Part shown: one piece after another, positions 3,138 through 57,866 of the stretch
Layout: each line of letters begins with the position of its first letter
How positions within the stretch are numbered: the stretch's first letter is position 1
From: Macrostomum lignano
Lineage: Eukaryota
Reading direction: 5' to 3'
Assembly: GCA_002269645.1 (NCBI GenBank)
Contig: NIVC01000004.1
Coordinates: forward strand, 248,001 to 312,000
Length of the DNA: 64,000 bases
Notes under the pieces: model-generated
Seen by the model: only the letters and a program-made list of their open reading frames with translations
Database searches by the model: none
What the model was told of the DNA's origin: nothing
Translations under genes and position numbers: made by a program

Positions 3138-4900
<1,763 letters not shown>

Positions 4901-6970: not shown

Positions 6971-6981
6971 GTAGACATCTC

Positions 6982-7246
6982 CAGGGGCATAGCCAGGATT
7001 TTTTTTTGGGGGTATCGGTTAGCTGTTATCAGAAAGCAAGGGCTTGAGATCCACATATCCCCTTAATGTATTTCTAGTGCATAATACATATGATTACTCT
7101 ATTTGTTTGTTAATTGTTATTCTTTCGATTTGGATACCTTTCTCTTCCTTAACGGTCACAACTGCAACTGAAAAAAGGAAAAAATGTTGCTTTGGAAATT
7201 TGGGGGTATCGGCCGATATACCGATACCCCCCTCGCTATGCCCCTG
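6982..7246. mobile_element. Non-autonomous hAT-type MITE, 265 bp
   Basis: TIRs CAGGGGCATAGC / GCTATGCCCCTG; 8-bp TSD GACATCTC at 6974-6981 and 7247-7254. Confidence 0.9.
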
Positions 7247-14293: not shown

Positions 14294-17200
14294 ATGCGCT
14301 CCGATTCGGCAGCCGCGTCGACCGACACCAGTGGCGACGCAGCCAGAAAAGACACCGCCGCCGCAACTTCATCGCCGCCGCCAACCCCAACAAGCCGCGA
14401 CCTGCGCAGGAGCGGACGGTCCCGCCGCCGCAGCAGTGGCCCACTTGATGACCAGCCGGCCAGCCACCGGATCAACGGGGTCGAGTACCGCCTAGGCGAC
14501 TGCTGTTACGCCGAGGAGCCTGGCCGGCCGGACGAGCCATACATTATTGGCCAGTTGGAGGAGATGCGGGTCAGCAGGCGCGAGGCGGCCAGCGTGAGGC
14601 TGCGCGTGTTTTGCCGGACTCAGGTGAGCTGCTGAGTTTTCGCGGAAAAGCGTTTGCTTATCGAAGAACCCCTCGTGCTCTGATCTGCTTGGCGCATTCA
14701 CCCTTGCAATCGCCTTGACAATATTCCTGTCAGTTTCTAAGAATTGGCATCCAACCAACCCTAGAACCAGCCTCAAACCAATCCTAGAACCAGCCTCAAA
14801 CCAATCCTAGAACCAGCCTCAAACCAATCCTAGAACCAGCCTCAAACCAATCCTAGAACCAGCCTCAAACCAATCCTAGAACCAGCCTCAAACCAATCCT
14901 AGAACCAGCCTCAAACCAATCCTAGAACCAGCCTCAAACCAATCCTAGAACCAGCCTCAAACCAACCCTAGAACCAGCCTCAAACCAATCCTAGAACCAG
15001 CCTCAAACCAATCCTAGAACCAGCCTCAAACCAATCCTAGAACCAGCCTCAAACCAATCCTAGAACCAGCCTCAAACCAATCCTAGAACCAGCCTCAAAC
15101 CAATCCTAGAACCAGCCTCAAACCAATCCTAGAACCAGCCTCAAACCAACCCTAGAACCAGCCTCAAACCAATCCCAGAACCAGCCTCAAACCAATCCTA
15201 GAACCAGCCTCAAACCAATCCTAGAACCAGCCTCAAACCAATCCTAGAACCAGCCTCAAACCAACCCTAGAACCAGCCTCAAACCAATCCTAGTACCAGC
15301 CTCAAACCAATCCTAGAACCAGCCTCAAACCAATCCTAGAACCAGCCTCAAACCAATCCTAGAACCAGCCTCAAACCAATCCTAGAACCAGCCTCAAACC
15401 AATCCTAGAACCAGCCTCAAACCAATCCTAGAACCAGCCTCAAACCAATCCTAGAACCAGCCTCAAACCAATCCTAGAACCAGCCTCAAACCAACCCTAG
15501 AACCAGCCTCAAACCAACCCTAGAACCAGCCTCAAACCAATCCTAGAACCAGCCTCAAACCAATCCTAGAACCAGCCTCAAACCAACCCTAGAACCAGCC
15601 TCAAACCAACCCTAGAACCAGCCTCAAACCAATCCTAGAACCAGCCTCAAACCAACCCTAGAACCAGCCTCAAACCAACCCTAGAACCAGCCTCAAACCA
15701 ACCCTAGAACCAGCCTCAAACCAACCCTAGAACCAGCCTCAAACCAACCCTAGAACCAGCCTCAAACCAACCCTCAAGCATCGGCTCAATTTCCTACTTG
15801 ACGAATTGTCCTGGACAATCTGAAGAATCTCCTCGGAGAAAAAATAACTATTCAAGAGCTCTCTGAGCCACAAGCCCTCCAAACCTGATTGGTCCTTGCG
15901 CCTTCTCAACGCTCAGGACGTGCCGGACGCGGCCTACGAGGCGCAGGGCTGCCGCGACAGCATGTTTGAAGGCGACCCCCGTCAAGAGGAGGCCCGCCTC
16001 CGCGAGCTTTTTCTCAGCGAAGCTCGCGAATCCTTGCCGGCCGCCAGCCTGCGCGGCCGCTGTCGAGTGGATCGTTTTCCGGACCTGGCGGCCGCTTCTG
16101 CTGGCTACCGCCTGCGGCCAGACGCCTTCTACTGCGTGTTCAACTACAGCCCCGAGACCCGGCGGCTGTCCAGCACAAGGACTGAAATTCGAGTCGGCCC
16201 ATCGTTTCAGGCCGAGCTGCCCGACTGCAGGGACGAGGTGCGCGGTTGGCTGGGCCTTCATGGGTTTGGGCTTCTGCGCTTCTTGAATGGCTGTTGGCGT
16301 TGGGCAGCTGTAGGCTCCTGCTGGGTAGCTGTAGGCTCTTGTTGGGCAGCTGTAGGCTCTTGTTCGGTAACTGTAGGCTCTTGTTGGGCAGCTATAGGCT
16401 CTTGTTGGGCAGCTATAGGCTCTTGTTGGGTAGCTGTAGGCTCTTGTTCGGTAGCCCAGGCTCTTGCTGGGTAGCTCTAGGCTCCTGCTGGGTAGCTGTA
16501 GGCTCTTGTTCGGTAGCCCAGGCTCTTGTTGGGTAGCTGTAGGCTCTTGTTGGGCAGCTGTAGGCTCTTGTTGGGCAGCTGTAGGCTCTTGTTGGGCAGC
16601 TGTAGGCTCTTGTTGGGCAGCTGTAGGCTCTTGTTGGGTAGCTGTAGGCTCTTGTTCGGTAGCCCAGGCTCTTGTTGGGTAGCTGTAGGCTCTTGTTGGG
16701 TAGCTGTAGGCTCTTGTTGGGCAGCTGTAGGCTCTTGTTGGGCAGCTGTAGGCTCTTGTTGGGCAGCTGTAGGCTCTTGTTGGGCAGCTGTAGGCTCTTG
16801 TTGGGCAGCTGTAGGCTCTTGTTGGGTAGCTGTAGGCTCTTGTTCGGTAGCCCAGGCTCTTGTTGGGTAGCTGTAGGCTCTTGTTGGGTAGCTGTAGGCT
16901 CTTGTTGGGCAGCTGTAGGCTCTTGTTGGGTAGCTGTAGGCTCTTGTTCGGTAGCCCAGGCTCTTGTTGGGTAGCTGTAGGCTCCTGCTGGGTAGCTGTA
17001 GGCTCTTGTTGGGTAGCCGTTTTTGTCTCTTTGTGGTTAGCCATTGACTCTTACTGAACCAAAAACAACTGCCATTGGCTTAGGTCACTAAACCGATAAT
17101 AACATAATCACAGGCACAGTTTTGGGCCTATTCTAACAACCATTTTAAGCATTTCCCTTCCAATTGGTGTCATCTGTTGCTTTTCCCAGTCTAAAAGTAG

Positions 17201-19337
17201 ATATCTGCTGCAGACCGCAACTTAGCTTTATCTTGCATTAATAATTCAACAAAATATTCATTGAGCACAAGGCAGAAAATTGTGATAAGCGCTCAGTTCC
17301 AGCAATGAGGCTCAAGTCAGGATGGCCGAGTGGTCTAAGGCGCTGCGTTCAGGTCGCAGTCCTCTTCTGAGGGCGTGGGTTCGAATCCCACTTCTGACAA
17401 AATTTTTGTCACTTTTCGCAAATTAGTTCTGCATTCGAGTCCAATGGTGAAGGTTGCTTGTTTTTATAATTTTAGGCATCAAGGCTTAAGTTCTGGTATA
17501 TTACGTTTCTTACAGTACTATTAGTAGTGCGATCTATCAAAATCATTTGCCTATCATTCCGCAGGTTCCACAGATGCACCCGCTGGCTGACGAGGCTGGC
17601 CGGGTCTGGGAGACTCCCCGCTGGCTACCCGGCCACCTGGAGGACGAGGAGCTCCACATGTACATCCGCGCTGCCCGCTCCTTGGCTGCCTTCGCCGGCT
17701 TCTGCGACCTCGGCAGCGCCAGCGAGGGTCAGGCATCGGCCGGCACCGACCGGACGGCGCAGCGGGCCCTCGACGCACTTCACGACCTCGACTACGATGT
17801 CCGGCTGGCTCTCCGCGTGCTGGTACGCAACCCGCGACTCAACGGCGCCGGTGGCGGTGGCTTCGACGACGGCGACTGCGGCGCACCCTGGTCGCGCGAG
17901 TGCGTGCGCCGCTTTCAGAAGGGCGTCCGCCAGTACGGCAAAAACTTCTGCCGAATCCGGCGCGAACTCCTGCCAGAGCGCCGGGTCGGCCAGCTGGTGC
18001 ACTTCTACTACCTGTGGAAGCGGTCGCCGGCTTGCCCGAACGGTGCCCGGTCGGCCGGGAGACGCGGCGGCGGTGGCGGCGCCGCATCGCCAGCCGCTCA
18101 GTTCGAGCCGCTCTGCCGCAACTGCGAGCAAATCCCGGCGGCCGGAGACGGCGACCCGCTCTGTGGCGAGTGCCGCCAGTTTTACCTCAAGTACGGCGAG
18201 GACCGGCCTTGCCACAGCTCCCGTGCCGGTGCCAGCGCAGATGACACCGACGGTGCCAACGAGGTGGCGTCGGTGAAAGCCGAAGCTACCGCTGCCGCCA
18301 GCATCACCAATACTGCAGAGGCAGGCGCTAGCGAAGACGCTGTAGACGGCGACGCCGAAGGTGAGCGCGAGGACTCGGACAGCTCAAGCAGCGAGGACAG
18401 CAGCGGCTCCAGTGACAACTCGAGCGATGAAGCGATCGCTGCCTTCGATGACCCCCCGAGCACTTCGCGCACAGCAAGCAGGCGCGATTCCCCCTCGCCG
18501 CCTCCGCCGCCGCCTTCGTCCACAACGCCGCCTTCACCGACGCCCTCCCGTCCGGCTCCTGTCTGCAGTCCGGCCCCTCTGCCCTGCCGTCTGGCCGGCG
18601 CCCACGTCAGCAGCGGCGGCCGCTGCCTTCAGCGAGTCTGGCTACGCAGCGGAGGCCGCAACTCCTGCGCCCGCACCGACCTGCATTTTCAGGCGCCCGC
18701 GACGGCCAGCCGCGCCGACTCCAGCCGTCAGCCCACCTGTCGACCTGTCGCTGCCGCTCCCGCCTCCTCGTCGGTCCCGGCTGCATCGCCCTGGCCAACT
18801 TCAGCGCCGCTTTCTCGACCTCGTTCGCCAGTAGGAGCCGCGGCGGAGGAGCAGCAGCGGAAGATGCTCGCCGCCGCCTGGCAGTCGGAGCAAGCGCGCC
18901 TGGCCGAGTTCGCCTACCTGCAGTCCGCCAGCTGCAGCAGCGCTAGGCAGCCGCCGCCTCCGCACTTTGGCCCGCTGATGCAGCCGCCACTATCGCCACA
19001 CGAGTTCGCCGGCCACAGCGCCGCCTTTGGCCCGGATCCGTTTGCCGCCTTCGGCCGCCCCGCGATGCCGCTGCAGCCTCCGCCATCGCCGCACCATCAC
19101 CAGCGACAGCAGCTGATGCAGCATCATCTGTTCAGAGCGCCGCAGCCCCCGCCTTCGTCGGAATTCGCACCCCTCTTTGCAGCTGCCGCGGCGGCTGCTT
19201 CCCAGCAGCATCATCAGCAACAGCAGCTTCATCAGAGTATTGCTCAGCGTCATCAACATCAGGTGATGTGCGACCCCCGCTGCCTTCCATTCGACCCCGC
19301 TCTGCTGGCCTTCCCGCCGCTGCCGTCGCCTCGCTGA
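14294..19337 (+). CDS. RERE: RERE/Atrophin-2 (EGL-27-like) co-repressor: BAH-ELM2-SANT-GATA-short atrophin region, about 807 aa; exons 14294-14623, 15917-16237, 17565-19337
   Basis: Motifs YRLGDCCY (BAH), RELFLS, NYSPETRRLSSTRTEIRVGPSFQAELPD, MYIRAARSLAAFAGFCD (ELM2), WSRECVRRFQKGVRQYGKNFCRIRRELLP (SANT), CRNC...LCGECRQFYLKYGE (GATA-like) and RNSCARTDLHF (atrophin). Both introns are phase-0 GT-AG. The true start may lie in an upstream exon. Confidence 0.95.
14754..15776. repeat. 23-bp minisatellite (aaaccaatcctagaaccagcctc)n, about 44 copies, in RERE intron 1
   Basis: Seen directly. Confidence 0.97.
16300..17015. repeat. 21-bp minisatellite (gggcagctgtaggctcttgtt)n in RERE intron 2
   Basis: Seen directly; gives the spurious TATQQEP and GSCRLLL ORFs. 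Confidence 0.96.
17316..17399 (+). tRNA. tRNA-Leu(CAG) in RERE intron 2
   Basis: GTCAGGATGGCCGAGTGGTCTAAGGCGCTGCG-TTCAGGT-CGCAG...GGTTCGAATCCCACTTCTGACA: A and B boxes, CAG anticodon, long variable arm, downstream T5 terminator. Confidence 0.97.
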
Positions 19338-24994: not shown

Positions 24995-27900
24995 ATGAAC
25001 CCCCAGCCTCCGCCAATGCAGCCAAGATCGATAAGCGGATGGCCGCTGCCGCTGGGCTGCAACAGTGCGGAGGCGCTGCCACCTTTCCTGACTGGCGCGG
25101 TGCCACCACTGCCGTTTCCCATCCCGTTCAGCCACCTGCCCGGCATGCAGGCCGATCCACGCCTGCGCGTTGCTGGCCTCGCCAGGCAGGACAGCTTTGA
25201 CGAGGTGGCCAGCGGCGGCAGCAACGCCAGCGCTGGTGTTGGCGGCGGTGGGGTCGGCGGCGGCCCCAGCGGAAGCAGCGCCGGAGGCGGAGCCGCCATG
25301 TCGCACAAGCAGGTCCGCCAGCGCCTCCAGGAGGTCATTCTCAACAAGCAGCGCAACAGGGAGCTGTCAAACTCGCCCCCGGAGTGGGCCTCGCCGCAGA
25401 GCAGCTTTGAGTCGGCCGGGTCTCCGCCCACCCGCTGGCAGGTAGGGCGCTGCCGGTTATGTGCGACCTTCGCTAGCCAGCTGGATAGGGTGTGAAGGCT
25501 GCTCCAGAGAGACGGTGCATATATAGGATCAGATGGAACCGGGGGAGATCGAGAATCCCTTATCCAGATAGACAGAGACAGATTCGCACGAAAATATGAA
25601 ATGAAAATTCCCAACCAGGTGCAGCACACATTCCCACTGCCGGCCGGATCCCCATTGAAGGACTTCCCGCTGCGCAAGACCAGCTCCGAGCCCAACCTGA
25701 AAGTCCGCACGGCCGCCATGCGCCACCAGCGGGGCGCCGCGCTGCTCGACCGGACGGCCAAGCGGCGGCTGCGCTCGCTTCTTGAGCGGTCAGGCATCGG
25801 CAACGCCGCCGCCCCAGCAGCAGCGACAGCCACCGCCGTCTCCTCAGCTGCCAGCGGTGCCTCCGGCCAGTCGGTGGAGTGCCACGCCTCGCTGCCCAAC
25901 TTGGCTGGCCTGAAAGCTCGCCTGAGCATTGCCGCCGCCGCCGCTGCAGCAGCCGGCGCTGGCGGTCCCGCCGCCCTCTGCCGGCCCGCGGAGTCGATGC
26001 CCCGCCGGCGGCCCGGCAAGCAGCTCAGCCGGACCCGGTCGGCGCCGCTGCCGATGCCCGTCTCGGCGGTGAAGGCGCAGCTGCGGCAGAAGGTGCTGCA
26101 CCGGTCCGGCTCCGCCGACGATGCGCCCGCGGGCCCGCAGCCGCCTGGCTCCGCCGCGCCTCCGCCCTGCTGCGCCAGTCACGGAGCTGCTCCTCAGATC
26201 CGCGAGGAGGCCGAAGAGGATGGCCTGGCGATGCTGGAGCGGGCCTGCAGCACCCCGCTGATGCAGCTGCCGTCTCCCATTGCCGAGGAGCGGCCGAACG
26301 ACCTGCTGCCCGCTGCCAGTGGCACCGCGTTGGCCTACGATGAAGGCATGCTGGCGCACCGCTGCCTGTGTAACCAGAGCCGCCTGCACCCGGAGAACCC
26401 GCTCCGCCTGGAGCTGGTCTGGCAGCGGCTGGTCGAGACGGGACTGGCAGCTCGCTGCATGCGCTGTCGGTAAGTGCGCGGCGGTTGGGGATCCGGGATG
26501 TTGGGTGGTTGAGAATTGAGGATCCGGGATGTTGGGTGGTTGAGAATTGAAGATCTGGGAGTTGGGACAAGTGGATCTACAGTAAAATCAATAATATCGT
26601 TCCTTTGCCCCAAAGGTCCCGCAAGGCGACCATCGAGGAGCTGCGCCTGTGCCACGGCGAGATGTACAGCGTGCTGCACGCCACACAGCCGTCGCAGCGT
26701 ACCCGCCTGGACCCGGCCCTGCTGCTGAACTTCAAGTTCGCCCAGCTGCCCTGCGGCGGATTTGGCGTGGACACGGACACGGTGTGGATCGAGGGCGGCA
26801 CCGCCCAGGCCTGCCGGTTGGCCGTCGGCGTCCTGCTGGAGCTCTGCCAGCGCATCGTGCTTGGCGACTGCCGCAACGGCTTGGCGCTCATCCGGCCGCC
26901 CGGCCACCACGCCGAGGACTCGCAGGCCATGGGCTTCTGCTACTTCAACTCCGTGGCCATCGCCGCCCGCAGTCTGGTCCGCTCCGGCCAGGCCGCCCGT
27001 GTCTGCATTGTGGACTGGGACGTCCACCACGGCAACGGCACGCAGTCAGTGTTCTACTCGGACCCCAGCGTGCTGTACATCTCGCTGCACCGCTACGACG
27101 GCGGCGCCTTCTTCCCCGGCTCCGGCGCCGTGGAGGAGATCGGCGAGGGTCCCGGGCTGGGGACCAACATCAACATCGCCTGGTCTGGACAGGTGAGACT
27201 CCTCCAGAGTCCATGCTGGGTTATCTATAGTGGCGAGCCCCTCTAATTAGTCTGCTGTATTGGCCAGCCCCTCTAATTAGCCTGCTGTTGAATTGGCTGT
27301 ATTGGCCAGCCCCTCTAATTAGCCTGCTGTTGAGTGGCTGTATTGGCCAGCCCCTCTAATTAGCCTGCTGTTGAATTGGCTGTATTGGCCAGCCCCTCTA
27401 ATTAGCCTGCTGTTGAGTGGCTGTATTGGCCAGCCCCTCTAATTTCCATGCTATTGAAGCTAGTGTAATAAATCTCCCTTATCTTCCATCAAGCTTCCCA
27501 GTCTCACCTGACCCCTCCCCATCCCGCAGGTGATGGGTGACGCTGAGTACCTTGCCGCATTCCGCGCCATCGTGCTGCCAGTCGTTGCCCAGTTTTCCCC
27601 GACGCTGCTGCTCGTCTCCGCCGGCTTCGACGCCGCCCGCGGGCACCCGTCGAACCTCGGCGGCTACTGCCTGTCACCCGAGGGCTTCGCCCAGCTCACC
27701 GCCCAGCTTATCCGCGCCACCCCCGGCGGCCGCATCGCGCTGGCACTGGAGGGCGGCTACGACCTGGCCACGCTGCCCGACTGTGTGGAGGCCTGCCTCC
27801 GGGTTCTACTCGGCGAGCCCGAGCCCGCCCTGTCCGACGCCGAGAGGCACCGGCGGCCCAACCCGGATGCGGTGGATCTCATCCACCAGGTGGTCCGCCA

Positions 27901-28030
27901 GCAGCGCCAGTTCTGGGGCGACTGCCTCGGCCTGCCAAGCGCCGACACCATCGATATGAGCGTCGAGGAGGCGACGCGGCGGCTGCAGGCGCTGACTGTG
28001 TGCGGTGGTCCCTCGGAGTGCGGGGTGTAG
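24995..28030 (+). CDS. HDAC4: Class IIa histone deacetylase (HDAC4/5/7/9 orthologue), about 771 aa; exons 24995-25441, 25619-26469, 26616-27132, 27530-28030
   Basis: MEF2-binding helix VRQRLQEVILNK; 14-3-3 sites PLRKTSSEPNLK, LSRTRSAPLP and ERACSTP; deacetylase motifs RPPGHHAE, GFCYFNSVAIA, DWDVHHGNGTQ, FFPGSG, SAGFDA and LEGGYD. Splice phases 0, 2, 0 are consistent. An upstream exon is possible. Confidence 0.97.
27230..27445. repeat. About 40-bp minisatellite (ggctgtattggccagcccctctaattagcctgctgttga) in HDAC intron 4
   Basis: About five units seen directly. Confidence 0.9.
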
Positions 28031-28166
28031 AGGGGGGCGGTCCCTCTGAGTGCGGGCGGTCCCTCTGAGTGCGGGATGTTCACTGTATTCTAAAAGTGAC
28101 TATTTTAAGTCGCTGTCACTCCAGTCTGGGACTGATTGCCATATTAGATATGGCAGGCAATAATTC

Positions 28167-31100
28167 CTATTTTTAACTGCTAAAAATAGCCCTTATTGAA
28201 CTCGCATCGGATCCGGGCAGCAGAAAATTTCATCCCATTTCTGTACCCTGAATTCAGTCGAGTGGATCTTATTTAAACAGAATTGTTGCTTTTTAAGTCT
28301 AAATTTAGCAGCAATAAACTCGAGGCCGTCATGAGTTCCAGTTTAGCGCAGCCCATTGTCCCAACTGCTCCCCCATTGTGCGTCCTTAGCTAGCTAGTCT
28401 GCGGCAGCGCGCCCTGGTGCCGCTATTGCTGTTAGTGATTCTGTGAAACTGTTCTAAATTCGGCACCCCCAAGCGCCCGTTTAAATTTCCTGTTGTGTGG
28501 AGGCCTGCGGCGCCTTCGCATCTGGTTATTTATGTGTCTGTCTGCTTATATATAGATTTGTGTTCGTCAGCGCAGATGCCACAGCACATATTGTGTACAG
28601 AACAGTTGCGCAGTCTGTGTGCATTCTCTCTTGTTTTGTGCTCAGCTTTTGACCCCTCTAATTTGCCAGTCAGGCTTTGCCCTCAGCCCGTTCACCGCTT
28701 GTGTTTGTGAATGTCCAATCAGCTGCTTTTTTGTGTCTGGCGCCCGGGCCGCGTAGCTGTAGCCCTCCTTGTACAGCCCCTCCCCTCATCCCTGACTGTC
28801 CGTGCACGCAAGCCAAGGCGCCACAACTGCTCTCTCTCTGCTAAACTTCTCTTGCACGCTTTCGCGGGTCCGCCACGTTTTTTGATTGATTAATTGATTG
28901 ATCGAGAGTATATTTGAACTGACTTTTTGACTATAAGGATTTATTGTTGTGCCGGAGGTAGACACTGCACTTTAATACACTGTCAGCCAGTTCGCGTGAT
29001 CCCTTTTGTGTCCGAGCTGTTAAAAATTTTACACCCGTCTTCTCGGCGTTAATCTTCGCTTTCATTTTTTATCCAACAATCGGGACTGGCTTGCTTCTGA
29101 ATCGACTAAATTTAGCCTGGCCTCCACTGTGCTGACCCGGCCGCTCGCCTGTCTGCCCTCCCGTCCCACTCACAGGCCGGCTAAATTTAGAGCCCGCGGC
29201 CCGCCTTATCCCACTTCCCCAGTCAGCGTCTTCCGTAGCCGCCCTCCCCGTTCGTCTCCGCGGCCTCCTGCTCTGCCCTAATCCCATCTTCCCGCTCTGT
29301 CCCTCCCGCTCCCATCCCCGGGCCGTGCGGACTTGACCAAGGAAGAGAAGCGCGGGCTGGCGAGGCCGGCAGCGGCAAAGGCGGCAGGGTAAGAGGGGAC
29401 AAGTCGGTGTTGACCGCCCTGCGCCGCTCCCACTCTCGCTGGTCCGGCAGGGATTTCTAATTTTAGCTGGCTTGCGACTGGTCGTTAATCCCCCCTCTCT
29501 CTCTCCAGTTCCTCAGAAATCCCACTTCCTAGACACTAAACGGACGGAGGGGGCTCACTTCGCCTCTGCCTGCCTCCCTCCCTCCCTGTATTGGCCCAGC
29601 TGCGCCGTGCGCCTCATCGAGGGAGGGGTCCAGATTCCTTACTGACTGGCTGCAATCCCCCTTGCCGCCGTTGATCCCCGACTCTGTAGCAGTTTCTGAA
29701 CAGAAGCAGCAAGGCAAGACGCGGCTGCCACCCTGCCAGGTCTGCTTCCCCGTCTTCCCCTAGCAGAGAGCCATTCATCCGTCAGTAGCCGCGCAGCGCT
29801 CCGCCTGCAATTCAATGCCTGCTGCACTTCCTACCTTGCGTGTTCAGCTTCCCTAATAAACAGCCAACAATGCTAATGCACTATTCATGCCACTCCCCCC
29901 GCTAGTTTCTCAAACTTGCCGGCTGCTGCTTGAAGCTGAAGCGAAAGTATGAAGCTGACGCGCCTGGACTGCGGGGAGGCACCGTGGCAACTTGGCCGGT
30001 GCCGGCCCGACGGCCCTCACTCATCCATTGGAATGCTGCTGTTCCGCCGGACAGCTAATTGCCCTCCGCAAGCCCTCTGCAGTGCGTCATGTCTGCCTGT
30101 CATACCCGGCTTACAGCATCATCATTATTCCTACGTTTAGCAACGCTTCTTTTCTTCTTCAACTACCCGCTACTTCTGCTGCTGCGGAACGGAGCCAGTG
30201 CAAAAGTTCTGCAATCCACCGGCAGGGCCGGACTCTTGATTGTCCGCGTGGAAGAGCTGAAATAAGAGACTGGCAAACAGGGGTGCGAGGAAGACAAAAG
30301 GCAGCGGAGCAAAGCAACAAAACCCCAGGCCGGTGTCGCTTCACAACCGCGCCTCTCGGCTGCCACTGCGGCGCTCAACTTGGGCGCCCGTCCTCCCGAC
30401 TGCTGGGCGGAAGTCGATCCCCCATGGCTTGTTGTCCCGCCCAAGTTTTCCCCGCATTCCGTGCAGAGGGACGGCTGGGGAGCCTCGGTTTGATGTCACG
30501 GGATTTTGCCGCCGGCTACTCGAGCGCCTTTCCCAGTGTTGATGGGGTGCAGGCACAGCCTGCGGCTCACTTTCACCTGAGCGCACCCCCTGCTGAGAGA
30601 GGCGAACTTAGAGAGGGGATTAATCCCTCCTCGGAGCGGGTTAGGAGAGTCAAAATTCTGGCAGCTCGAGTCAGCGAGATTTTTTATTAATCCGCCCCCC
30701 ACCTCTCCGCCATTCACCTGGCAGCGCCTTGGGCCTCAGCAGGTCTGGCGGGCCCGACTGCTCACGTCAACAGCTCGGGCCGGGATGGAACGGATCGCGT
30801 GTGCAGCTCGGATTCTGGCTAAATTTAGCCAGCCGCATCAATTTCTGCTCGCAGCTTCCCGGTCCAGTTCGTGCTCCCTCTTTTGCAAAAAAATCCCCAT
30901 AGTGGGAAAAGGGATTTGCTCGCCTGTGGCGGCTTAGCCGAGCTGCCGAGGGCGTGAAATCTTTGTCCGCTCTATTTTTAGCAGCAGCCGGGCCCCTGTT
31001 TGACTTCCCCGGTCGAACTTCCTGCCTCCCCACCCCGCCGTGATTAAAGAAACTTTTGCGCCCTCGCGCACTTTGCCCCGTTTTCCACTGTTGCTGTTCG

Positions 31101-31410
31101 GGTTGCCGAATCAATTTAGTAATTAAAAAGAATTTGCCTGCGCGGCAGGAATGCAAATTCTCGAGCACTCAGGCGGACAAAGCGCGGGGGGAGGCAGGCG
31201 GTGTTGCGGGGCCGGTGGCTGCTCGGCTTCGCCCACAGGCTCTGCCCGAGCTGGGCTTCCTTCAATACCTGCCGTCCCTGCTGCCCTGTTTACCCGCGAC
31301 CAGGCCAGCCATCCGGTTGCCATTTTGGGAATTCGCTCGCCGCCTTGGCAGCTGGCAGATCGGGGCTCCATCCGGATCTGGCCCCTGCTTGCCGAGGCCG
31401 CTATAAATAG
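28167..31410. promoter_or_regulatory. Cluster of MEF2 consensus sites CTA(A/T)4TAG; candidate enhancer or promoter region
   Basis: Perfect sites start at 28180, 28299, 29106, 29181, 29457, 30819, 30972 and 31401; a relaxed CTATTTTTAA is at 28167. Flanks are non-repetitive, and CAGCTG/CACCTG E-boxes are interspersed. Confidence 0.6.
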
Positions 31411-31669
31411 ACCCGCTTCCCCTTTCACTCAAAGCACGTTTCCCGGCCTGTTTTTTCTAAATCCAACTCCCCTTTTATCCTGATAGTGCTTCCTGTCTTC
31501 TTTGTCTTTCCCGAATCCTTTTCAGGCTTTGCAGTTCTGCTTCCTTTAATGCCAGCAGCCCGGATTTGTCGCCTCCTTCATCCTCAGATTGCAGCTTCTC
31601 AGCCCAGTCATAGCCTTATAACTCAAATTTCTAGATTAATTAGCCTTCTCAAATCCTCAGATCCTTTCT

Positions 31670-34575
31670 CATCTCCCCAGATTCTCATCTCCCCAGATTC
31701 TCATCTCCCCAGATTCTCATCTCCCCAGATTCTCATCTCCCCAGATTCTCATCTCCCCAGATTCTCATCTCCCCAGATTCTCATCTCCCCAGATTCTCAT
31801 CTCCCCAGATTCTCATCTCCCCAGATTCTCATCTCCCCAAATTCTCATCTCCCCAGATTCTCATCTCCCCAGATTCTCATCTCCCCAAATTCTCATCTCC
31901 CCAGATTCTCATCTCCCCAAATTCTCATCTCCCCAGATTCTCATCTCCCCAGATTCTCATCTCCCCAGATTCTCATCCCCCAGATTCTCATCTCCCCAAA
32001 TTCTCATCTCCCCAGATTCTCATCTCCCCAGATTCTCATCTCCCCAGATTCTCATCTCCCCAGATTCTCATCCCCCCAGATTCTCATCCCCCAGATTCTC
32101 ATCTCCCCAGATTCTCATCCCCCAGATTCTCATCTCCCCAGATTCTCATCTCCCCGAATTCTCATCTCCCCAGATTCTCATCTCCCCAGATTCTCATCTC
32201 CCCAGATTCTCATCTCCCCAGATTCTCATCTCCCCAGATTCTCATCTCCCCAGATTCTCATCTCCCCAGATTCTCATCCCCCAGATTCTCATCTCCCCAA
32301 ATTCTCATCTCCCCAGATTCTCATCTCCCCAGATTCTCATCTCCCCAGATTCTCATCTCCCCAGATTCTCATCTCCCCAGATTCTCATCTCCCCAGATTC
32401 TCATCTCCCCAGATTCTCATCTCCCCAAATTCTCATCTCCCCAGATTCTCATCCCCCAGATTCTCATCTCCCCAAATTCTCATCTCCCCAAATTCTCATC
32501 TCCCCAGATTCTCATCTCCCCAGATTCTCATCCCCCAGATTCTCATCTCCCCAGATTCTCATCTCCCCAGATTCTCATCTCCCCAAATTCTCATCTCCCC
32601 AGATTCTCATCTCCCCAGATTCTCATCCCCCAGATTCTCATCTCCCCAAATTCTCATCTCCCCAGATTCTCATCTCCCCAGATTCTCATCTCCCCAGATT
32701 CTCATCTCCCCAGATTCTCATCTCCCCAGATTCTCATCCCCCAGATTCTCATCTCCCCAAATTCTCATCTCCCCAGATTCTCATCTCCCCAGATTCTCAT
32801 CTCCCCAGATTCTCATCTCCCCAGATTCTCATCTCCCCAGATTCTCATCCCCCAGATTCTCATCTCCCCAGATTCTCATCTCCCCAGATTCTCATCCCCC
32901 AGATTCTCATCTCCCCAGATTCTCATCTCCCCAGATTCTCATCTCCCCAGATTCTCATCTCCCCAGATTCTCATCTCCCCAGATTCTCATCTCCCCAGAT
33001 TCTCATCTCCCCAGATTCTCATCTCCCCAGATTCTCATCTCCCCAGATTCTCATCTCCCCGAATTCTCATCTCCCCAGATTCTCATCTCCCCAGATTCTC
33101 ATCCCCCAGATTCTCATCTCCCCAGATTCTCATCTCCCCAGATTCTCATCCCCCAGATTCTCATCTCCCCAAATTCTCATCTCCCCAGATTCTCATCTCC
33201 CCAGATTCTCATCTCCCCAGATTCTCATCCCCCAGATTCTCATCTCCCCAGATTCTCATCTCCCCAGATTCTCATCTCCCCAGATTCTCATCTCCCCAGA
33301 TTCTCATCTCCCCAAATTCTCATCTCCCCAGATTCTCATCTCCCCAGATTCTCATCCCCCAGATTCTCATCTCCCCAGATTCTCATCTCCCCAGATTCTC
33401 ATCTCCCCAGATTCTCATCTCCCCAAATTCTCATCTCCCCAGATTCTCATCTCCCCAGATTCTCATCTCCCCAGATTCTCATCTCCCCAGATTCTCATCC
33501 CCCAGATTCTCATCTCCCCAAATTCTCATCTCCCCAGATTCTCATCTCCCCAGATTCTCATCTCCCCAGATTCTCATCTCCCCAGATTCTCATCTCCCCA
33601 GATTCTCATCTCCCCAGATTCTCATCCCCCAGATTCTCATCTCCCCAGATTCTCATCTCCCCAGATTCTCATCTCCCCAGATTCTCATCTCCCCAGATTC
33701 TCATCTCCCCAGATTCTCATCTCCCCAGATTCTCATCTCCCCAGATTCTCATCTCCCCAAATTCTCATCTCCCCAGATTCTCATCTCCCCAGATTCTCAT
33801 CTCCCCAGATTCTCATCCCCCAGATTCTCATCTCCCCAGATTCTCATCTCCCCGAATTCTCATCTCCCCAGATTCTCATCTCCCCAGATTCTCATCTCCC
33901 CAGATTCTCATCTCCCCAAATTCTCATCTCCCCAGATTCTCATCTCCCCAGATTCTCATCCCCCAGATTCTCATCTCCCCAGATTCTCATCTCCCCAGAT
34001 TCTCATCTCCCCAGATTCTCATCTCCCCAAATTCTCATCTCCCCAGATTCTCATCTCCCCAGATTCTCATCCCCCAGATTCTCATCTCCCCAGATTCTCA
34101 TCTCCCCAGATTCTCATCTCCCCAGATTCTCATCTCCCCGAATTCTCATCTCCCCAGATTCTCATCTCCCCAGATTCTCATCCCCCAGATTCTCATCTCC
34201 CCAGATTCTCATCCCCCAGATTCTCATCTCCCCAGATTCTCATCTCCCCAGATTCTCATCTCCCCAGATTCTCATCTCCCCAGACTCCCTCTCTCATCTC
34301 TCCAGATCCGCTCTCTCATCTCTCCAGATCCCCTCTCTCATCTCTCCAGATCCCCTCTCTCATCTCTCCAGATCCCCTCTCTCATCTCCCCAGATCCCCT
34401 CTCTCATCTCCCCAGACTCCCTCTCTCATCTCCCCATATCCGCTCTCTCATCTCTCCAGATCCCCTCTCGCATCTCTTCAGATCCCCTCTCTCATCTCTC
34501 CAGATCCCCTCTCTCATCTCCCCAGATCCCCTCTCTCATCTCCCCAGATCCCCTCTCTCATCACCCCAGACCCCC
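31670..34575. repeat. 2.9-kb minisatellite (ccccagattctcatct)n with 14-bp variants, grading into a (ccagatcccctctctcatct)-type unit at the 3' end
   Basis: Seen directly; source of the spurious 1031-aa ORF. Confidence 0.98.
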
Positions 34576-35089
34576 CTTTAATCTGTGCAAGCTCATCGCA
34601 CTCCTGCCACAGTTCGTCAAGCACGCGCCAGCCGAGTTGCCGGGACCGCACCCGGCCGACAACGGCAGGCACTTCAGCCTGCTCCAGTCCTTAATGCCAT
34701 TCCAGGCGAAACTGAAGTGCTGCTGATCAGCCGACAGCCGCGATGGCTGGGCCTGGCTGCTATTTTATTCCTGATCCGCTTATCGGATCCGCAGTCGGCG
34801 CATGCCCCCCCCCCACCCCGGCTTAACCCGGCCGGCCCCGTTTCCTACCTGTTGGTCCTGCATTTGAGAAGGGATTTTTGGGCCAGCTCGGCTGAGTTAC
34901 TGAGATCCCCCCCCGCCTGCGCCCCAGCATCGTGACATGGCGCGTGGGCGGCAGCGCTTGCGTGATGCGTCTTGCCTAAAAACAGTTTTTTTACTTTGCC
35001 GCTCCCACCAGTCAGTTACTTGTTCTGTGTTCTTTTGGAAGGCTTAATAGCACTTTTTGATTCTTCTGTGCGTTCGTGGTTTCCAATTC

Positions 35090-35285
35090 TCTACTCCTCG
35101 CTACGTCTACTCTACTCTACTCTATTTTCTACTCTATTCTACTCTACTCTACTCTACTCTAATCTAATCTAATCTAATCTAATCTAATCTACAATCTACT
35201 CTACTCTACTCTAATCTAATCTAATCTACAATCTACTCTACTCTACTCTGTTTTACTCTACTCTATTCTATTGTACTCTACTCTC
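35090..35285. repeat. Compound pentanucleotide microsatellite (CTCTA)n/(AATCT)n
   Basis: Seen directly. Confidence 0.92.
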
Positions 35286-36353
35286 ATCCAGAATTTGCAT
35301 TATAAGTTGACCTTTTTTGTCCTGTTTCCGAGCTGGGTCAGATCTCCAAGTACGTCAGAAGGCCAATTTCGGTCGGTTTTATTGTCGATGCTTTTTCTAG
35401 TTTCTATTTTTAAAAGGTTTCCACCCCTACTTCTGCTGCGATAGCAGGCAGGCCAGGCCACACACCTGGCTCGCATTGCTGGGACTGTTCAAGCCTTCTA
35501 CACTGGGCGCCATTGTCTATTCATCTCTCTTTACATTTGCAACAAAAAATTCTTAGTGCATTCGAGGTTAAAAGCAGCTGATAAAAGGTGGTCCGAAACG
35601 AGAGACCTCATGTGAACAATTCAATTGCTCTAGCAATGTGATTTCAAAGCCAAACTGTGCGAAATACTGTAGAGTATTGGGACTGCAGCTCTCATTAAAC
35701 ATAGTGTATGTTTACGCTTAGCTTCAAGTTGTACTACTAACAGTAGGCTGTAACAAAAAATTGCTAAGCTGTTGCACGTTATGCATAAATAAATAAGAAG
35801 AATAAAAAATCAAGAGCAGGCAAAATTTACTGCTCGTAATCCCTATCAACCATTTAATCGAAGCTTCTGGTTATTTTTAAATTCCGAAGAAAAATCCACG
35901 CAAATTCGGGTGCTTCCACACCGGAAGCAAAATTATTCTCATGGAGTCTCTTGAAGCAAAATTTTTACTAGAAGCGTGAATTTTAGCAAAGCGGTTTACT
36001 GCTGATTGCTGCAACAGACAACTGAAATTGAAATTTGCGAAGAATGAAATAGGAAAATATGGGTGTCTTTCAACTGTGGGATATTCGGCAGCCTGCAATC
36101 TCATTGAAAAAATGCCCAACAACAGTCAAAAGTTCCAACTACCAAGCAAAGATAATTTTATTTACCTTTTTTGTGCATTACTTTTTAAATGCAGTTTTCT
36201 CTCTAAGTAAGCTGCGTGATTTGCACAGGTGGAACTTTGGACTGTTGCTGAGTTTACAAAAAATCAGAGTGCACAGCTAAATGAACAATTTTTTGAAAAA
36301 CTTGCATTGCAAAATCATGCAGACCAGAGTCTCAGTGGCTAATGCACATGGAA

Positions 36354-37339
36354 GGGGAGCACCCCAACTGCCAGCCGACAACTGCCAGCCGAGAAAACTG
36401 CCAGCCGGAAAACTGCCAGCCGACAACTGCCAGCCGACAACTGCCAGCCGACAATTGTCAACCAAGAAAACTGCCAGCCGGAAAACTGCCAGCCGACAAC
36501 TGCCAGCCGACAAGTTCTAGCTAATTGAATCTACTGTAGCCTACTTATTAGCTAAGTCAAAAGCACGAAACTGTTTGGCTAGCAAAAGGCTTGTGGGGTA
36601 GCATTAAATATCGCCCTTCCCTTCCCTAATTTTTTCAGATTTCCATTAGAAGTATATATGTGAAGGAGAAGGCATTCTGTAATGCCTATTGTAAATATTT
36701 TTGTATTGAAAGTTCATTTACTTTATTATTTAATTTGCGATTGCGATTGCTATATGACGCAATCCTAGAAAAGTCTATTAAATTACTTTACTTAAATAAA
36801 GCTTTCAAAGAAAGAGCAAAGGCTACCTAAAATACGAAATTCGAACCAAGATGTTCCTGCAGGAGCCGAAAGTTGCCAGCTCTGATTCGTTCGCGCACGT
36901 GCCGCACAAGCTTACAAACTTTTGTTGGCGATAAAACAAAACAACTTGTAGCTGGGCTAACTGATTTCTGTAACAATGCAATGGCAACCTGTTTTTGCTG
37001 AATAATTAACTGATTTAATAAATAGTAAACGAAGCTGTCTACTTTCTAGCTAGATCCTGAATGCCATATTGCGGAAGGTGTAGTATACGCCGGAAAATTC
37101 CGGCGTACAAACGCTTTGTCTGGCGTACATCTAGCGTTTTTCTCGCTGGCAGTTTTCCGGCTGGCAGTTGTCGGCTGGCAGTTGTCGGCTGGCAGTTGTC
37201 GGCTGGCAGTTGTCGGCTGGCAGTTTTCTTGGCTGGCAATTGTCGGCTGGCAGTTTTCCGGCTGTCAGTTGTCGACTGGCAGTTGTCGGCTGGCAATTGT
37301 CGGCTGGCAGTTTTCCGGCTGGCAGTTGGGGTGGACCCC
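36354..37339. mobile_element. Unclassified non-autonomous DNA transposon, 986 bp, with inverted subterminal repeat arrays
   Basis: TIRs GGGG(AG/TC)CACCCCAACTGCCAGCCG; (ctgccagccgacaa)n on the left mirrored by (ttgtcggctggcag)n on the right; direct repeat ATGGAA at 36348-36353 and 37340-37345. Confidence 0.85.
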
Positions 37340-37345
37340 ATGGAA

Positions 37346-37635
37346 GTGGGGCGGGGGTATAGAGAGGCCAACCATAAAATCGATAGTCCCGACCACCCCA
37401 CACGCACAGGCGATAAATTGGGGCGGAGGTATAGAGAGGCCAACCATAAAATCGATAGTCCCGGTCACCCCACACGCACAGGCGATAAAGTGGGGCGGAG
37501 GTAATAGAGAGGCCCATCACAAAATCAATAGTCCCGGCCATCCCACACGGACAGGCGATAAAGTGGGGCGGGGGTATAGAGAGGCCAACCATAAAATCGA
37601 TAGTCCCGACCATCCCACCCGCACAGGCGATAAAC
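37346..37635. repeat. About 70-bp tandem repeat, four copies
   Basis: gtggggcgggggtatagagaggccaaccataaaatcgatagtccc...caggcgataaa repeated. Confidence 0.9.
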
Positions 37636-37869
37636 TGGAGCTGGTGGAGACATAAGTTGGGGCTGCAGATGTCAGAAAAGTATACTCAGCAACATTCAAA
37701 AGTTCCACCCTCCAAATTGCGAAAACTTCACACTCACAATTCAACCCTCAAGTTACGCAACTATAAAGCCGCCGCGAGGAAAGGAAAGTTGATTGAATAT
37801 CAATACTCGTAGTAAACGTCAGTCGCAAAATCTTAAATTTCTTATGCAATATTCAGTTAGAATCGCGAT

Positions 37870-38230
37870 GTGTGTAGGATCCCCTCGCACGCAGAAGTGC
37901 GGCGACTCTGCGGGGCATCCCAAGGATGAGGCGGCGCAGAAAGTCCTGGGGAAGCTGCTCCGAAGCGTTTTCAATGGCATGACGCAGAGCTCTCCGCAAA
38001 ATGCATGGTGGATTCTATTTTCGAATGTTGCGTTTTAGGAAGTCCCCAGACATGCTCGATGGGATTCATGTCTGGGGACCGGGGCGGCCAGCGCAGAGTG
38101 CGCAGCTGTAGCTGTTCTTTCGGTTGACTGACAGCATCGGCTTGGTGTGGCGGCGCGTTGTCCTCCTGGACCATTAAGCAGACCCAAGCCACCCCCAAGC
38201 GGCAATAAGCTTTGCGCGTGCCGTATGTTG
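37870..38230 (-). pseudogene. Tc1-family (DD34E) transposase C-terminal fragment
   Basis: EDNAPPH...WPPRSPDMNPIEHVW with 34 residues between D and E; after a frameshift it continues as LRRLILGMPRRVAALLRARG. Confidence 0.85.
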
Positions 38231-38396
38231 CGTCACTCGCAATAAGTGAAAAAATCATCTCGCTTTTGACTGTTGCTGAGTATGCATATACGCTCGTAGA
38301 AAAAATGATTTCTTTCCAAGGGAAAGCTGTTAGTAAGACTAAAACCCTTTACCTATATATTCTGAATGTAACTACAGCAATAACAGCATATATAAC

Positions 38397-38949
38397 TAGG
38401 GATTGCAATCCCGGGATCCCGGGATCCCGAAATCCCGGGATTGGGCCTAAACCCCGGGATTTCCAGTCCCGGGATTCGGGACCCCAAATCCCGGGACTAA
38501 TTTTTGTTAATATTTTTACAAAAAGTGCTGTAACATAAACATAATTAGGCCCACAACTAGTTTATTATACTGCGCTAATTTCCGTTAATTGCCTCACGTC
38601 GTGTGGCACCTTTTTAAACCCCGCATCACAGATTTAAATGTGAAATGAATTCCAATTTAAATTTTGATATGATTTGCTTCTTTACTACTAATTAGTACAT
38701 TTATACTACTTACTTCAATAGGTCACAAGATCATGCTGTTTATCATCTACAAATAGATCATTATCTCTATAAAAATAAAAAAAAGTAAGCAAAAAAGCGT
38801 TTAGCGCATATTTTGCCTGAAAATTTCAACCTAGAAGCATAAAAATCTGTATTATTCTGATCCCGGGATTCAATCCCGGGATTGGCCAAATTCCGGGATT
38901 AAATCCCGGGATCCCGGGATCACAAAAATCCGGGATTTTGCAATCCCTA
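38397..38949. mobile_element. Non-autonomous hAT element, 553 bp
   Basis: TIRs TAGGGATTGCAA / TTGCAATCCCTA, subterminal CCCGGGAT repeats, 8-bp TSD TATATAAC on both sides. Confidence 0.92.
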
Positions 38950-39118
38950 TATATAACGTTTGCTGGAAGCGAAAGCCTTACATTTACAAGTGGTTGCTTC
39001 TAAAGTGAAAAAGCAGCGATATTACAAATTAACTTCGAATTTTCGAAATCTAAGAATGAAACAACTCCAGCTGAGTAGCAGCGCCTCATGCACAGGTGGC
39101 TTCGTTTTAACAAGAAAA

Positions 39119-57866
<18,748 letters not shown>

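Follow-up and report, generated by a model that had tools for sequence, protein, structure and literature searches.

The MEF2-to-HDAC9 loop to which the initial annotation of this DNA appealed is documented in vertebrates, where MEF2D binding and dependence on two promoter sites have been reported for HDAC9 (PMC6954409), and the MEF2-HDAC9 negative feedback loop has also been described elsewhere (PMC8287581). The Macrostomum lignano locus analyzed here, part of a 64-kb stretch of contig NIVC01000004.1 (hereinafter the window; adding 248,000 to a window coordinate gives the contig coordinate), resembles HDAC9 in that MEF2 consensus sites adjoin a class IIa HDAC gene whose product contains a predicted MEF2-binding helix. 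The two differ in layout: in place of two promoter sites, the flatworm has eight perfect sites distributed across 3.3 kb of DNA 3' of the gene. Furthermore, the HDAC9 loop is a vertebrate system with binding data, and the flatworm array is a candidate predicted from its sequence. The proposed HDAC9-like arrangement thus holds with respect to the adjoining sites but not to their location, given that no strict site is present in the promoter; the 5.6 kb of AT-rich DNA upstream of the HDAC gene (to the ATG) contains only relaxed MEF2 sites, at chance level.

Several other known systems share features with the flatworm cluster. The decamer CTAAATTTAG, which is present in the cluster four times along with canonical variants, is identical to a decamer in the promoter of mouse Klf2 that was regarded as a functional MEF2 site and mutated accordingly (PMC4108324); in the mammal, however, it is a single proximal-promoter site. 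Like homotypic enhancers (for example, the MEF2-dependent muscle and neuronal enhancers of Drosophila and vertebrates), the cluster combines several sites for one factor in unique non-coding DNA, over distances from a few hundred bp to a few kb, but its density of perfect consensus sites is unusually high. Among the usual muscle partner motifs, neither E-boxes (10 vs 14.6 expected) nor CArG boxes (0 vs 0.27 expected) are enriched in the region, and the same is true of GATA and MCAT motifs; instead, TAATCC/GGATTA is found 5 times (1.07 expected; 20 of 5000 shuffles get to 5), with co-enrichment of CAGCTCGG (5 vs 0.28 expected). Composite MEF2/TATA core promoters exist in muscle genes, for example Xenopus MyoDa. 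The last site of the cluster, CTATAAATAG, similarly meets both consensuses and is followed by initiator-like CA dinucleotides at the usual distance, but whereas the composite promoters serve muscle genes, CTATAAATAG is a candidate by its sequence. In M. lignano, the tissue-specific elements tested to date are found no more than 2 kb upstream of start sites (PMC5730564), unlike the present cluster, which is 3' of the gene. Overall, the cluster is a real and striking candidate for a kind of array that is already known.

The gene upstream of the cluster was initially annotated as a class IIa HDAC, and this assignment is well founded. Its catalytic domain (Pfam Hist_deacetyl) scores 441 bits with HDAC4 and 425 bits with HDAC7, compared to 293 bits with a single HDAC6 domain, and both the helix and a 14-3-3 motif are kept, so that, judged by these features, the protein is a genuine class IIa HDAC with a predicted MEF2-binding helix. 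The gene is compact (3 kb), with the TAG stop codon at 28028-28030; protein P0001 (BOX15_Mlig032713g1) is 99% identical to the HDAC query, and locus L001 is 100% identical to positions 15010-38030 of the window. The helix SHKQVRQRLQEVILNKQR and the phospho-site motif LRKTSSEPNLKV were identified by comparison with a human HDAC4 segment (STEVKMKLQEFVLNKKK and FPLRKTASEPNLKL, taken as the sequence of the human protein). The human counterpart of the helix comprises HDAC4 residues 167-182. At the positions of the human MEF2-contact residues V171, L175, F178 and V179 (PMC10954479), the flatworm HDAC has V, L, V and I, respectively. The catalytic position is occupied by Tyr (EGGY), in contrast to His (H976) in human HDAC4; Drosophila HDAC4 likewise has Tyr (Y1142) at the equivalent position (PMC10763444). 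A search with the long HDAC protein retrieved M. lignano proteins only, followed by matches to double-domain HDAC6, a 165-aa C-terminal query yielded only short distant fragments, with its own gene absent from the matches, and a PDB search for the MEF2-binding peptide of HDAC9 or HDAC4 returned nothing useful.

Table 1. Features of the HDAC locus and the adjacent site cluster (window coordinates; matrix, JASPAR-cluster JC_0192 MEF2A from 10.1101/2024.09.03.611027 File S1, maximum 18.68 bits)
Feature	Position	Strand	Basis or remark
Class IIa HDAC gene	24995..28030	+	coding exons ~24995-25440, 25610-26440, 26620-27190, 27530-28030
SHKQVRQRLQEVILNKQR codons, counterpart of MEF2-binding amphipathic helix	25301..25354	+	BLASTP vs human STEVKMKLQEFVLNKKK
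LRKTSSEPNLKV codons, 14-3-3 / nuclear-export phospho-site motif	25670..25705	+	aligned to human FPLRKTASEPNLKL
Second 14-3-3 motif, SRTRSAPLP	26027-26053	+	translation
Catalytic-site LEGGYDL, Tyr retained	27746-27766	+	translation
Near-site CTATTTTAAG (reverse strand CTTAAAATAG)	28100..28109	.	matrix 13.05 bits
Relaxed MEF2-type site CTATTTTTAA	28167..28176	.	matrix 12.24 bits, reverse strand
MEF2-type site CTAAAAATAG (canonical)	28180..28189	.	matrix 18.61 bits, window top 3
MEF2-type site CTAAATTTAG (palindrome)	28299..28308	.	matrix 9.3 bits
First AATAAA after HDAC stop, possible poly(A) signal	28313..28318	+	283 nt past stop; role inferred
Relaxed site TTATATATAG	28546..28555	.	matrix 10.0 bits
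MEF2-type site CTAAATTTAG	29106..29115	.	strict scan, matrix 9.3 bits
MEF2-type site CTAAATTTAG	29181..29190	.	strict scan, matrix 9.3 bits
MEF2-type site CTAATTTTAG (reverse strand CTAAAATTAG)	29457..29466	.	matrix 13.58 bits
MEF2-type site CTAAATTTAG, inside GGCTAAATTTAGCC	30819..30828	.	strict scan, matrix 9.3 bits
MEF2-type site CTATTTTTAG (reverse strand CTAAAAATAG, canonical)	30972..30981	.	matrix 18.68 bits, window best
MEF2-type site CTATAAATAG	31401..31410	+	strict scan, matrix 17.70 bits
TAATCC/GGATTA (Otx/Pitx-type homeodomain) motifs, 5	29279, 29486, 30617, 30621, 30688	.	motif scan, 29279..30693
16-bp-unit minisatellite TTCTCATCTCCCCAGA, ~165 copies, then 22-bp variant	31666..34575	.	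3' boundary of cluster
Convergent nephrin/SYG-2-like Ig-superfamily gene	3' end 39119		convergent to HDAC

An exhaustive scan of the window detected nine matches to CTAWWWWTAG, eight of which are clustered within 28180-31410 (Table 1) whereas the ninth starts at 6586. All eight sites of the initial annotation, and the site at 6586 as the only perfect one outside the cluster, were reproduced, but its single relaxed site has to be replaced with two YTAW4TAR sites (28167 and 28546); an additional near-site is located at 28100. Dinucleotide shuffles of the whole window contain 0.78 strict sites on average and 3 at most. When the analysis is confined to the DNA from the HDAC stop codon to the minisatellite (28031-31665; 55.5% GC), 0.025 sites are expected from the mononucleotide composition, and 5000 dinucleotide-preserving shuffles gave a mean of 0.020 and a maximum of 1, with none reaching 8, so the claimed excess (8 sites vs 0.02 expected) is indeed far above chance. 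Among S-W8-S decamers, 8 of the 12 in the cluster region are CTAW4TAG compared to 1 of 99 in the rest of the window, and an AT-island effect is therefore insufficient to explain the cluster. The comparison with matched windows also came out in favor of the claim, on the scale of ~172 kb of M. lignano DNA: no other 3.3-kb window contains more than 3 CTAW4TAG sites, and the two GC-matched windows with 3 sites are both at another HDAC paralog. The first relaxed and strict sites are located 137 nt and 150 nt, respectively, from the HDAC stop codon, and four MEF2-like sites fit within 210 bp just after it. Overall, the sites form three tight groups, in addition to single sites, with the members of the sub-groups (2-4 sites) spaced by 75-153 bp. 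Tandem duplication had been discounted at the outset, and the DNA described as non-repetitive and non-coding, and we agree on each count. The flanks are dissimilar, with shared similarity limited to the motif plus 3 to 6 nt; a search of the window for a second copy of the region or for a repeat family with the motif found none; and the region, which is single-copy in the window, contains no annotated gene (NCBI annotation, 28031-38030). Among annotated genes, that of the HDAC is the closest to the cluster, and the same holds for its promoter among annotated promoters.

These observations suggest that the 28100-31410 region is probably a MEF2-type cis-regulatory array, in which eight perfect sites and three near-sites for a MEF2-type MADS-box factor make up a homotypic set. 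Our preferred but tentative reading is that this array is a MEF2-driven enhancer of the HDAC gene that closes a feedback loop. The occupancy by MEF2, the activity as an enhancer, the cell type and the target are all inferred, as follows. MEF2 dimers would fill the sites, and the array would enhance the nearest annotated promoter, that of the class IIa HDAC, in cells where MEF2 is active, most likely neurons, as suggested by flatworm chromatin data, and possibly muscle and parenchymal cells as well. Because the MEF2-binding helix is retained, the HDAC would in turn associate with MEF2 at these sites and elsewhere, damping the MEF2 output. The result would be negative feedback like that of vertebrate MEF2-HDAC9, mediated by a 3' site array instead of two promoter sites.

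The choice of the HDAC as the target is favored by its promoter being the nearest annotated one and by the excess of sites at a paralogous HDAC locus, L004, and is disfavored by the TATA-like end of the cluster and by the remaining paralog. The L004 locus contains 4 canonical CTAAAAATAG sites (0.5 expected; 2 of 300 shuffles get to 4) in GC-rich DNA, some of them 3.3-4.4 kb upstream of the gene and the others inside intron 1. The flanks of these sites are alike, and two of the four are inside a 245-nt inverted repeat with 100% identity and therefore count as one, leaving three independent sites. At the remaining paralog (three assembled copies, L002, L005 and L006), the sites are not significantly in excess (32 of 300 shuffles), and the flanks of the three HDAC paralogs share no DNA similarity beyond the motif.

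With respect to the cell type, muscle or neural activity had been suggested, and the neural option appears likelier. Single-cell ATAC data from flatworms show the MEF2A motif as a marker of neurons in comparison with muscle (10.1101/2024.09.03.611027, Table S3C), and MEF2A and TAATCC motifs are both neural accessibility markers in M. lignano, a planarian and a schistosome (10.1101/2024.09.03.611027, Tables S3A, S3C); the TAATCC motif (JC_0071 oc) is given as a marker of both neural and muscle accessibility in flatworms (10.1101/2024.09.03.611027). In the flatworm Stenostomum, a MEF2 ortholog is a brain marker (PMC12569384). The learned 'WC' MEF2-like motifs of the ATAC study that we examined are 24-25-nt repeat-like matrices and were uninformative. 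By analogy, the array would be active in neural cells more than in muscle, which is the less likely site.

The "unannotated transcript" mentioned in the initial annotation is a serious, if somewhat unlikely, rival to the HDAC as the target because the cluster ends in a TATA box and the M. lignano elements tested are upstream-proximal. Under this scenario, an unannotated + strand transcript would start at ~31427-31431 and have the array as its upstream regulatory region and core promoter, with the last MEF2 site doubling as the TATA box and the HDAC gene a mere neighbor. Indeed, CTATAAATAG at 31401 holds a perfect TATA box, TATAAATA (31402-31409), followed by initiator-like CA at 31426-27 and 31430-31, 25-29 nt downstream, and is a candidate core promoter for such a transcript; the remaining sites are all at most 3.3 kb upstream of CTATAAATAG. 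For the M. lignano genes tested, 2 kb or less upstream of the start sites sufficed for tissue-specific expression (PMC5730564). In addition, the AATAAA at 28313, if it is used, would leave most of the sites outside the HDAC mRNA, with only the first sub-cluster in 3'UTR DNA; a second AATAAA is present at 29855. Against a local transcript, the NCBI annotation has no gene at 28031-38030, and the DNA 3' of the cluster consists of the 2.9-kb 16-bp minisatellite, further repeats and transposon remnants. The long ORF that traverses the minisatellite is a mechanical consequence of the repeat unit, which lacks stop codons in the three + strand frames, and an Rfam scan of 27900-39300 detected no family at threshold (sub-threshold matches are in repeats) and no miR-1 or miR-133. 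Furthermore, a distance of over 3 kb separates the four MEF2-like sites next to the HDAC stop codon from the putative start. The longest of the ORFs in this DNA (29992-30690, 232 aa) was rejected as a gene, with one weak seven-stretch match (E = 2e-5, 1.84 billion proteins) and no Pfam evidence. A search with the ORF at the 5' end of the validated M. lignano muscle promoter MYH6 gave no match.

A different question is whether the sites, chiefly the four CTAAATTTAG decamers, are bound by a non-MEF2 factor, for example another protein that binds AT-palindromes, such that the likeness to MEF2 sites is partly a coincidence. This possibility appears improbable. In its favor, one decamer accounts for half (4/8) of the strict sites, and the additive MEF2A matrix, which penalizes T at positions 6 and 7, gives it no more than 9.3 of 18.7 bits, a score exceeded by many random AT-rich matches in the window; the co-enrichment of TAATCC and CAGCTCGG points in the same direction. 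However, the three top MEF2A scores of the whole window (17.7-18.7 bits) are all inside the same cluster, and the matrix of RLM1, a MEF2-type MADS factor, accepts either A or T in each of the four central positions, so that CTAAATTTAG fits this broader consensus. Of the 16 half-sites, 15 are followed on the 3' side by A or C (background ~0.5, binomial probability ~3e-4), in agreement with position 11 of the MEF2A matrix (A 0.42, C 0.40), and the CTAAATTTAG palindromes show the same preference as the other sites. In the Klf2 promoter, moreover, CTAAATTTAG has been validated as a MEF2 site (PMC4108324). The flatworm cluster shows that this palindrome can dominate a set of sites even though it is underrated by standard MEF2 matrices. 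The original identification of the motif as the MEF2-type MADS-box consensus is therefore upheld, with eight exact matches far in excess of chance.

Still less probable is a role of the array as a MEF2-dependent enhancer for a different neighbor, namely the nephrin/SYG-2-like Ig gene or the BAH-ELM2-SANT-GATA (RERE/MTA-like) gene that is located upstream of the HDAC gene. The HDAC and Ig genes are convergent, with the cluster located between their 3' ends, and the best match of the Ig protein is C. elegans SYG-2, a nephrin homolog (1.7e-19). Nephrin-family genes function at synapses and in muscle of other invertebrates, and enhancers are able to act across such distances. However, the 5' end of the Ig gene is ~26 kb away and its 3' end 7.7 kb away, beyond repeats and transposon debris, the start of the RERE-like gene is at least 14 kb distant, and the HDAC promoter is much closer; moreover, the M. 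lignano elements tested to date are proximal (PMC5730564).

The motifs are very unlikely to be RNA-level elements of a long HDAC 3'UTR. The cluster does begin 137-150 nt past the stop codon, and long 3'UTRs are present in class IIa HDAC mRNAs of other animals, but the motif class is reverse-palindromic, the asymmetric variants are found in both orientations (CTAAAAATAG at 28180, CTATTTTTAG at 30972), as expected for a dimer recognizing DNA, and the flank preference is symmetric on both strands, all of which argues for recognition of double-stranded DNA; the AATAAA at 28313 is an additional argument against this explanation. Finally, repeats abound in the M. lignano assembly, which is also redundant in part (PMC5730564), but chance, a dispersed repeat or an assembly artefact can be practically dismissed given the shuffling results, the single-copy status of the region in the window, the lack of a motif-bearing repeat family there and the presence of the same ten sites in an independently assembled second copy (L003, contig NIVC01001887.1). 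This copy differs from the window by 35 events in 3570 bp (~1%), with ~1 change expected within the sites, so that site retention is uninformative with regard to constraint. At this low divergence, the substitution rates between the two copies are 0.68% in the cluster, 1.17% in AT-rich intergenic DNA and 0.26% in exons; the 16-bp minisatellite array is longer in L003 than in the window.

Whatever its target, the cluster is among the cleanest sequence-only enhancer candidates, and flatworm transgenics could make use of it as a compact driver that responds to MEF2 and is probably neuronal. M. lignano allows direct tests by transgenesis, RNAi and single-cell chromatin data. A broader proposition, that MEF2-class IIa HDAC feedback predates the vertebrates and here takes the form of a 3' array of ~10 sites that is mainly neuronal, with more than one HDAC paralog involved, is unlikely as a whole; under this proposition, the array may also provide MEF2-HDAC complexes with a platform for multi-site bridging such as has been proposed from the structure of HDAC4-MEF2A-DNA (PMC10954479). 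If MEF2 does drive the HDAC gene, feedback of the MEF2-HDAC9 type would go back to an old circuit of bilaterians and would not have been invented by vertebrates.

Scanning both strands of the 64-kb window in full gave nine CTA(A/T)4TAG sites, at exactly the positions given in the initial annotation, including the one at 6586. Eight of the nine lie within 3.23 kb; the single relaxed site reported previously has to be replaced by two YTAW4TAR sites plus a near-site. In the unique, 55.5% GC segment that runs from the HDAC stop codon to the minisatellite following it (28031-31665), 0.025 sites are expected from base composition, and none of 5000 dinucleotide-preserving shuffles contained eight or more (mean 0.020, maximum 1). 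AT islands do not account for the excess: 8 of the 12 S-W8-S decamers in the region match the motif compared with 1 of 99 in the remaining window; among all 64 XYZ-W4-revcomp(XYZ) families, CTA alone stands out. The comparison with other windows proposed in the initial annotation, run on 172 kb of M. lignano DNA, yielded at most three sites in any other 3.3-kb window. A dispersed repeat carrying the motif, considered there as an alternative origin, is not what we find: there is no second copy of the cluster region within the window, and similarity between sites extends no further than 3-6 bases of their flanks, so that the motif is not carried by a repeat family. Judged by its sequence, the region belongs to a known class of element, the homotypic cluster of transcription factor sites, and represents a new and unusually clean example.

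Features of the site cluster, its neighbourhood and the paralogous HDAC locus L004
Feature	Position	Strand	Remarks
Beta-tubulin gene	3138-4885	minus	
BAH-ELM2-SANT-GATA gene	14294-19337	plus	
HDAC gene	24995-28030	plus	
Nephrin/SYG-2-like Ig-superfamily gene	39119-57866	minus	long, with Ty3/gypsy insertion
GAT-domain gene			in window
Strict CTA(A/T)4TAG sites	6586, 28180, 28299, 29106, 29181, 29457, 30819, 30972, 31401		full scan
Relaxed YTAW4TAR sites	28167, 28546		
Near-site	28100		
TAATCC/GGATTA homeodomain motif	29279, 29486, 30617-30626, 30688		five instances inside cluster; one is the palindrome GGATTAATCC
8-mer CAGCTCGG/CCGAGCTG	29012, 30771, 30804, 30938, 31246		five copies vs 0.28 expected; four of five flank the last MEF2 sites
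Perfect POU octamer ATGCAAAT	31151-31158		250 bp upstream of the TATA-like MEF2 site
Tandem duplication, GGGCGGTCCCTCTGAGTGC x2	28035-28072		perfect, 19 bp, from 5 nt past HDAC stop codon; deletion in second locus copy
Minisatellite	31666-34575		16-bp unit TTCTCATCTCCCCAGA, ~165 copies
(GTCT)136 microsatellite	39805-40348		in SYG-2-like gene introns
Ty3/gypsy gag-pol ORF	48266-51760		in SYG-2-like gene introns
L004 MEF2 sites	three 3.3-4.4 kb upstream of ATG, one in intron 1		
L004 inverted repeat	5366-5610 / 6744-6988		245 nt, 100% complementary, upstream of the third HDAC paralog; one canonical MEF2 site per arm

The HDAC gene is on the plus strand and the Ig-superfamily gene on the minus strand, so their 3' ends converge on the cluster from either side; no gene is called in 28031-38030 in the public annotation. 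Locus L001, which contains the HDAC gene, is 100% identical to 15010-38030 of the window and places the window at NIVC01000004.1:248,001-312,000 in assembly Mlig_3_7. The Ig/FN3 transmembrane gene has Caenorhabditis elegans SYG-2 (nephrin family) as its best match, and its introns also contain mariner transposase fragments. The region most likely represents a predicted MEF2-responsive regulatory array. The strong rival is an unannotated transcript beginning near 31430: the cluster lies 3' of the HDAC gene, it ends exactly at CTATAAATAG, which includes a perfect TATAAATA followed after 25-29 nt by initiator-like CA dinucleotides, and for the M. lignano genes tested, 2 kb of upstream DNA is enough for tissue-specific expression (PMC5730564). 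However, beyond ~31430 there is a 2.9-kb minisatellite followed by further repeats and transposon remnants, and neither Rfam families nor credible ORFs were found downstream of this point; such a transcript is rather unlikely, if far from negligible. The minisatellite unit lacks stop codons in all three plus-strand frames, which explains why one frame remains open over 1031 codons; in L003 (16821-~22700), the second assembled copy of the locus, the array is much longer.

The assignment of the sites in the putative array to MEF2 was assessed by scoring the window with the MEF2A matrix JC_0192, taken from a flatworm chromatin study (10.1101/2024.09.03.611027). The top three matches in the entire 64 kb are the sites at 30972, 28180 and 31401 (17.7-18.7 bits of a possible 18.68), and the site at 29457 scores 13.6 bits. 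The four identical palindromes CTAAATTTAG reach only 9.3 bits each because the matrix disfavours T at positions 6 and 7, which weakens the original count of eight exact sites. The count is restored by three observations: mutation of the MEF2 site in the mouse Klf2 promoter targeted this very decamer (PMC4108324); RLM1, a broader MEF2-type MADS matrix, tolerates either A or T at each of the four central positions; and in 15 of 16 half-sites TAG is followed by A or C, in agreement with JC_0192, a preference common to the palindromes and the canonical sites. Asymmetric variants are present in both orientations within the cluster, as expected for a dimer on double-stranded DNA but not for an RNA-level motif, which is accordingly ruled against. 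Taken together, these features lead us to accept the cluster as predicted MEF2-type sites, and recognition by a factor other than MEF2, which the low-scoring palindromes might suggest, is improbable.

The protein encoded upstream (best match, 99%, to an M. lignano protein) is a class IIa HDAC, as originally assigned: its catalytic domain reaches 441 bits with human HDAC4 and 425 with HDAC7, compared with 293 with a single HDAC6 domain. The high rank of HDAC6 matches reflects only the two domains of that protein. In an alignment with human HDAC4, the stretch SHKQVRQRLQEVILNKQR matches the MEF2-binding helix, with V, L, V and I at the four hydrophobic contact positions V171, L175, F178 and V179 described in the HDAC4-MEF2A-DNA structure paper (PMC10954479). 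The 14-3-3 motif LRKTSSEPNLKV is present and the catalytic Tyr is retained, as it is in Drosophila HDAC4 (PMC10763444). At least three class IIa paralogs exist in M. lignano, each with one to three assembled copies (protein models P0001/P0241, P0002/P0244/P0245 and P0246/P0003, the window HDAC being P0001), and the helix, 14-3-3 motifs and catalytic Tyr are found in all of those detected. The only complete model, P0246, begins just before the MEF2-binding helix and lacks a glutamine-rich N-terminal domain ahead of it.

The second copy of the locus (contig NIVC01001887.1), which has the same upstream neighbour, keeps all ten sites; with 35 difference events in 3570 bp, the sites would be expected to hold about one change, so that its absence is uninformative. 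The substitution rate between copies in the cluster (0.68%) falls between those of exons (0.26%) and AT-rich intergenic DNA (1.17%) and is not decisive as a sign of constraint. The older paralogs are more informative. At the locus of P0246 (L004), 50-58% GC DNA holds four canonical CTAAAAATAG sites whose flanks are the same, against 0.5 expected (2 of 300 shuffles reach four); two of these are in the perfect inverted repeat and were counted as one. Either this repeat arose by inverted duplication very recently or it was produced by the assembly. In the three copies of the other paralog (L002, L005, L006), all sites are non-canonical and located in AT-rich DNA, with no significant excess. Within M. 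lignano, to which this comparison extends, two of three HDAC paralog loci thus show an excess of sites, which is suggestive rather than proof. The sites at 28299 and L004 11185 are identical over 14 bases, cttttaagtCTAAA, made up of nine flanking bases and the first five of the site, in otherwise unrelated DNA; this might reflect a composite element or chance.

The nearest annotated promoter is that of the HDAC gene, 3-6 kb from the cluster, which together with the paralog evidence is suggestive of HDAC as the putative target. With regard to cell type, the muscle partner motifs E-box, CArG, GATA and MCAT are not enriched in the cluster region, and TAATCC (Otx/Pitx type) occurs five times against 1.07 expected (20 of 5000 shuffles reach five). 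In the flatworm single-cell ATAC study, MEF2A and TAATCC motifs are reported among those with greater accessibility in neurons than in muscle in M. lignano, planarian and schistosome alike, and a TAATCC-type motif is listed as both a neural and a muscle accessibility marker (10.1101/2024.09.03.611027). A MEF2 ortholog is a brain marker in Stenostomum, another early-branching flatworm (PMC12569384). Our best guess is therefore that the array would function in neurons.

If MEF2 acts via the array on the HDAC gene, the resulting loop would resemble the vertebrate MEF2-HDAC9 feedback loop, the closest known system, in gene class and motif. However, the flatworm sites form a 3' array, whereas the HDAC9 loop relies on a pair of promoter sites (PMC6954409); site number and organism differ as well, and loop function in the flatworm is predicted from sequence. 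Hence, the cluster is treated as a candidate for working like the MEF2-HDAC9 loop and not as a member of that system. MEF2-HDAC regulation, like everything past the sequence itself, is what we infer; the statistics of the cluster are exceptional, and the feedback hypothesis is open to direct testing in transgenic flatworms.
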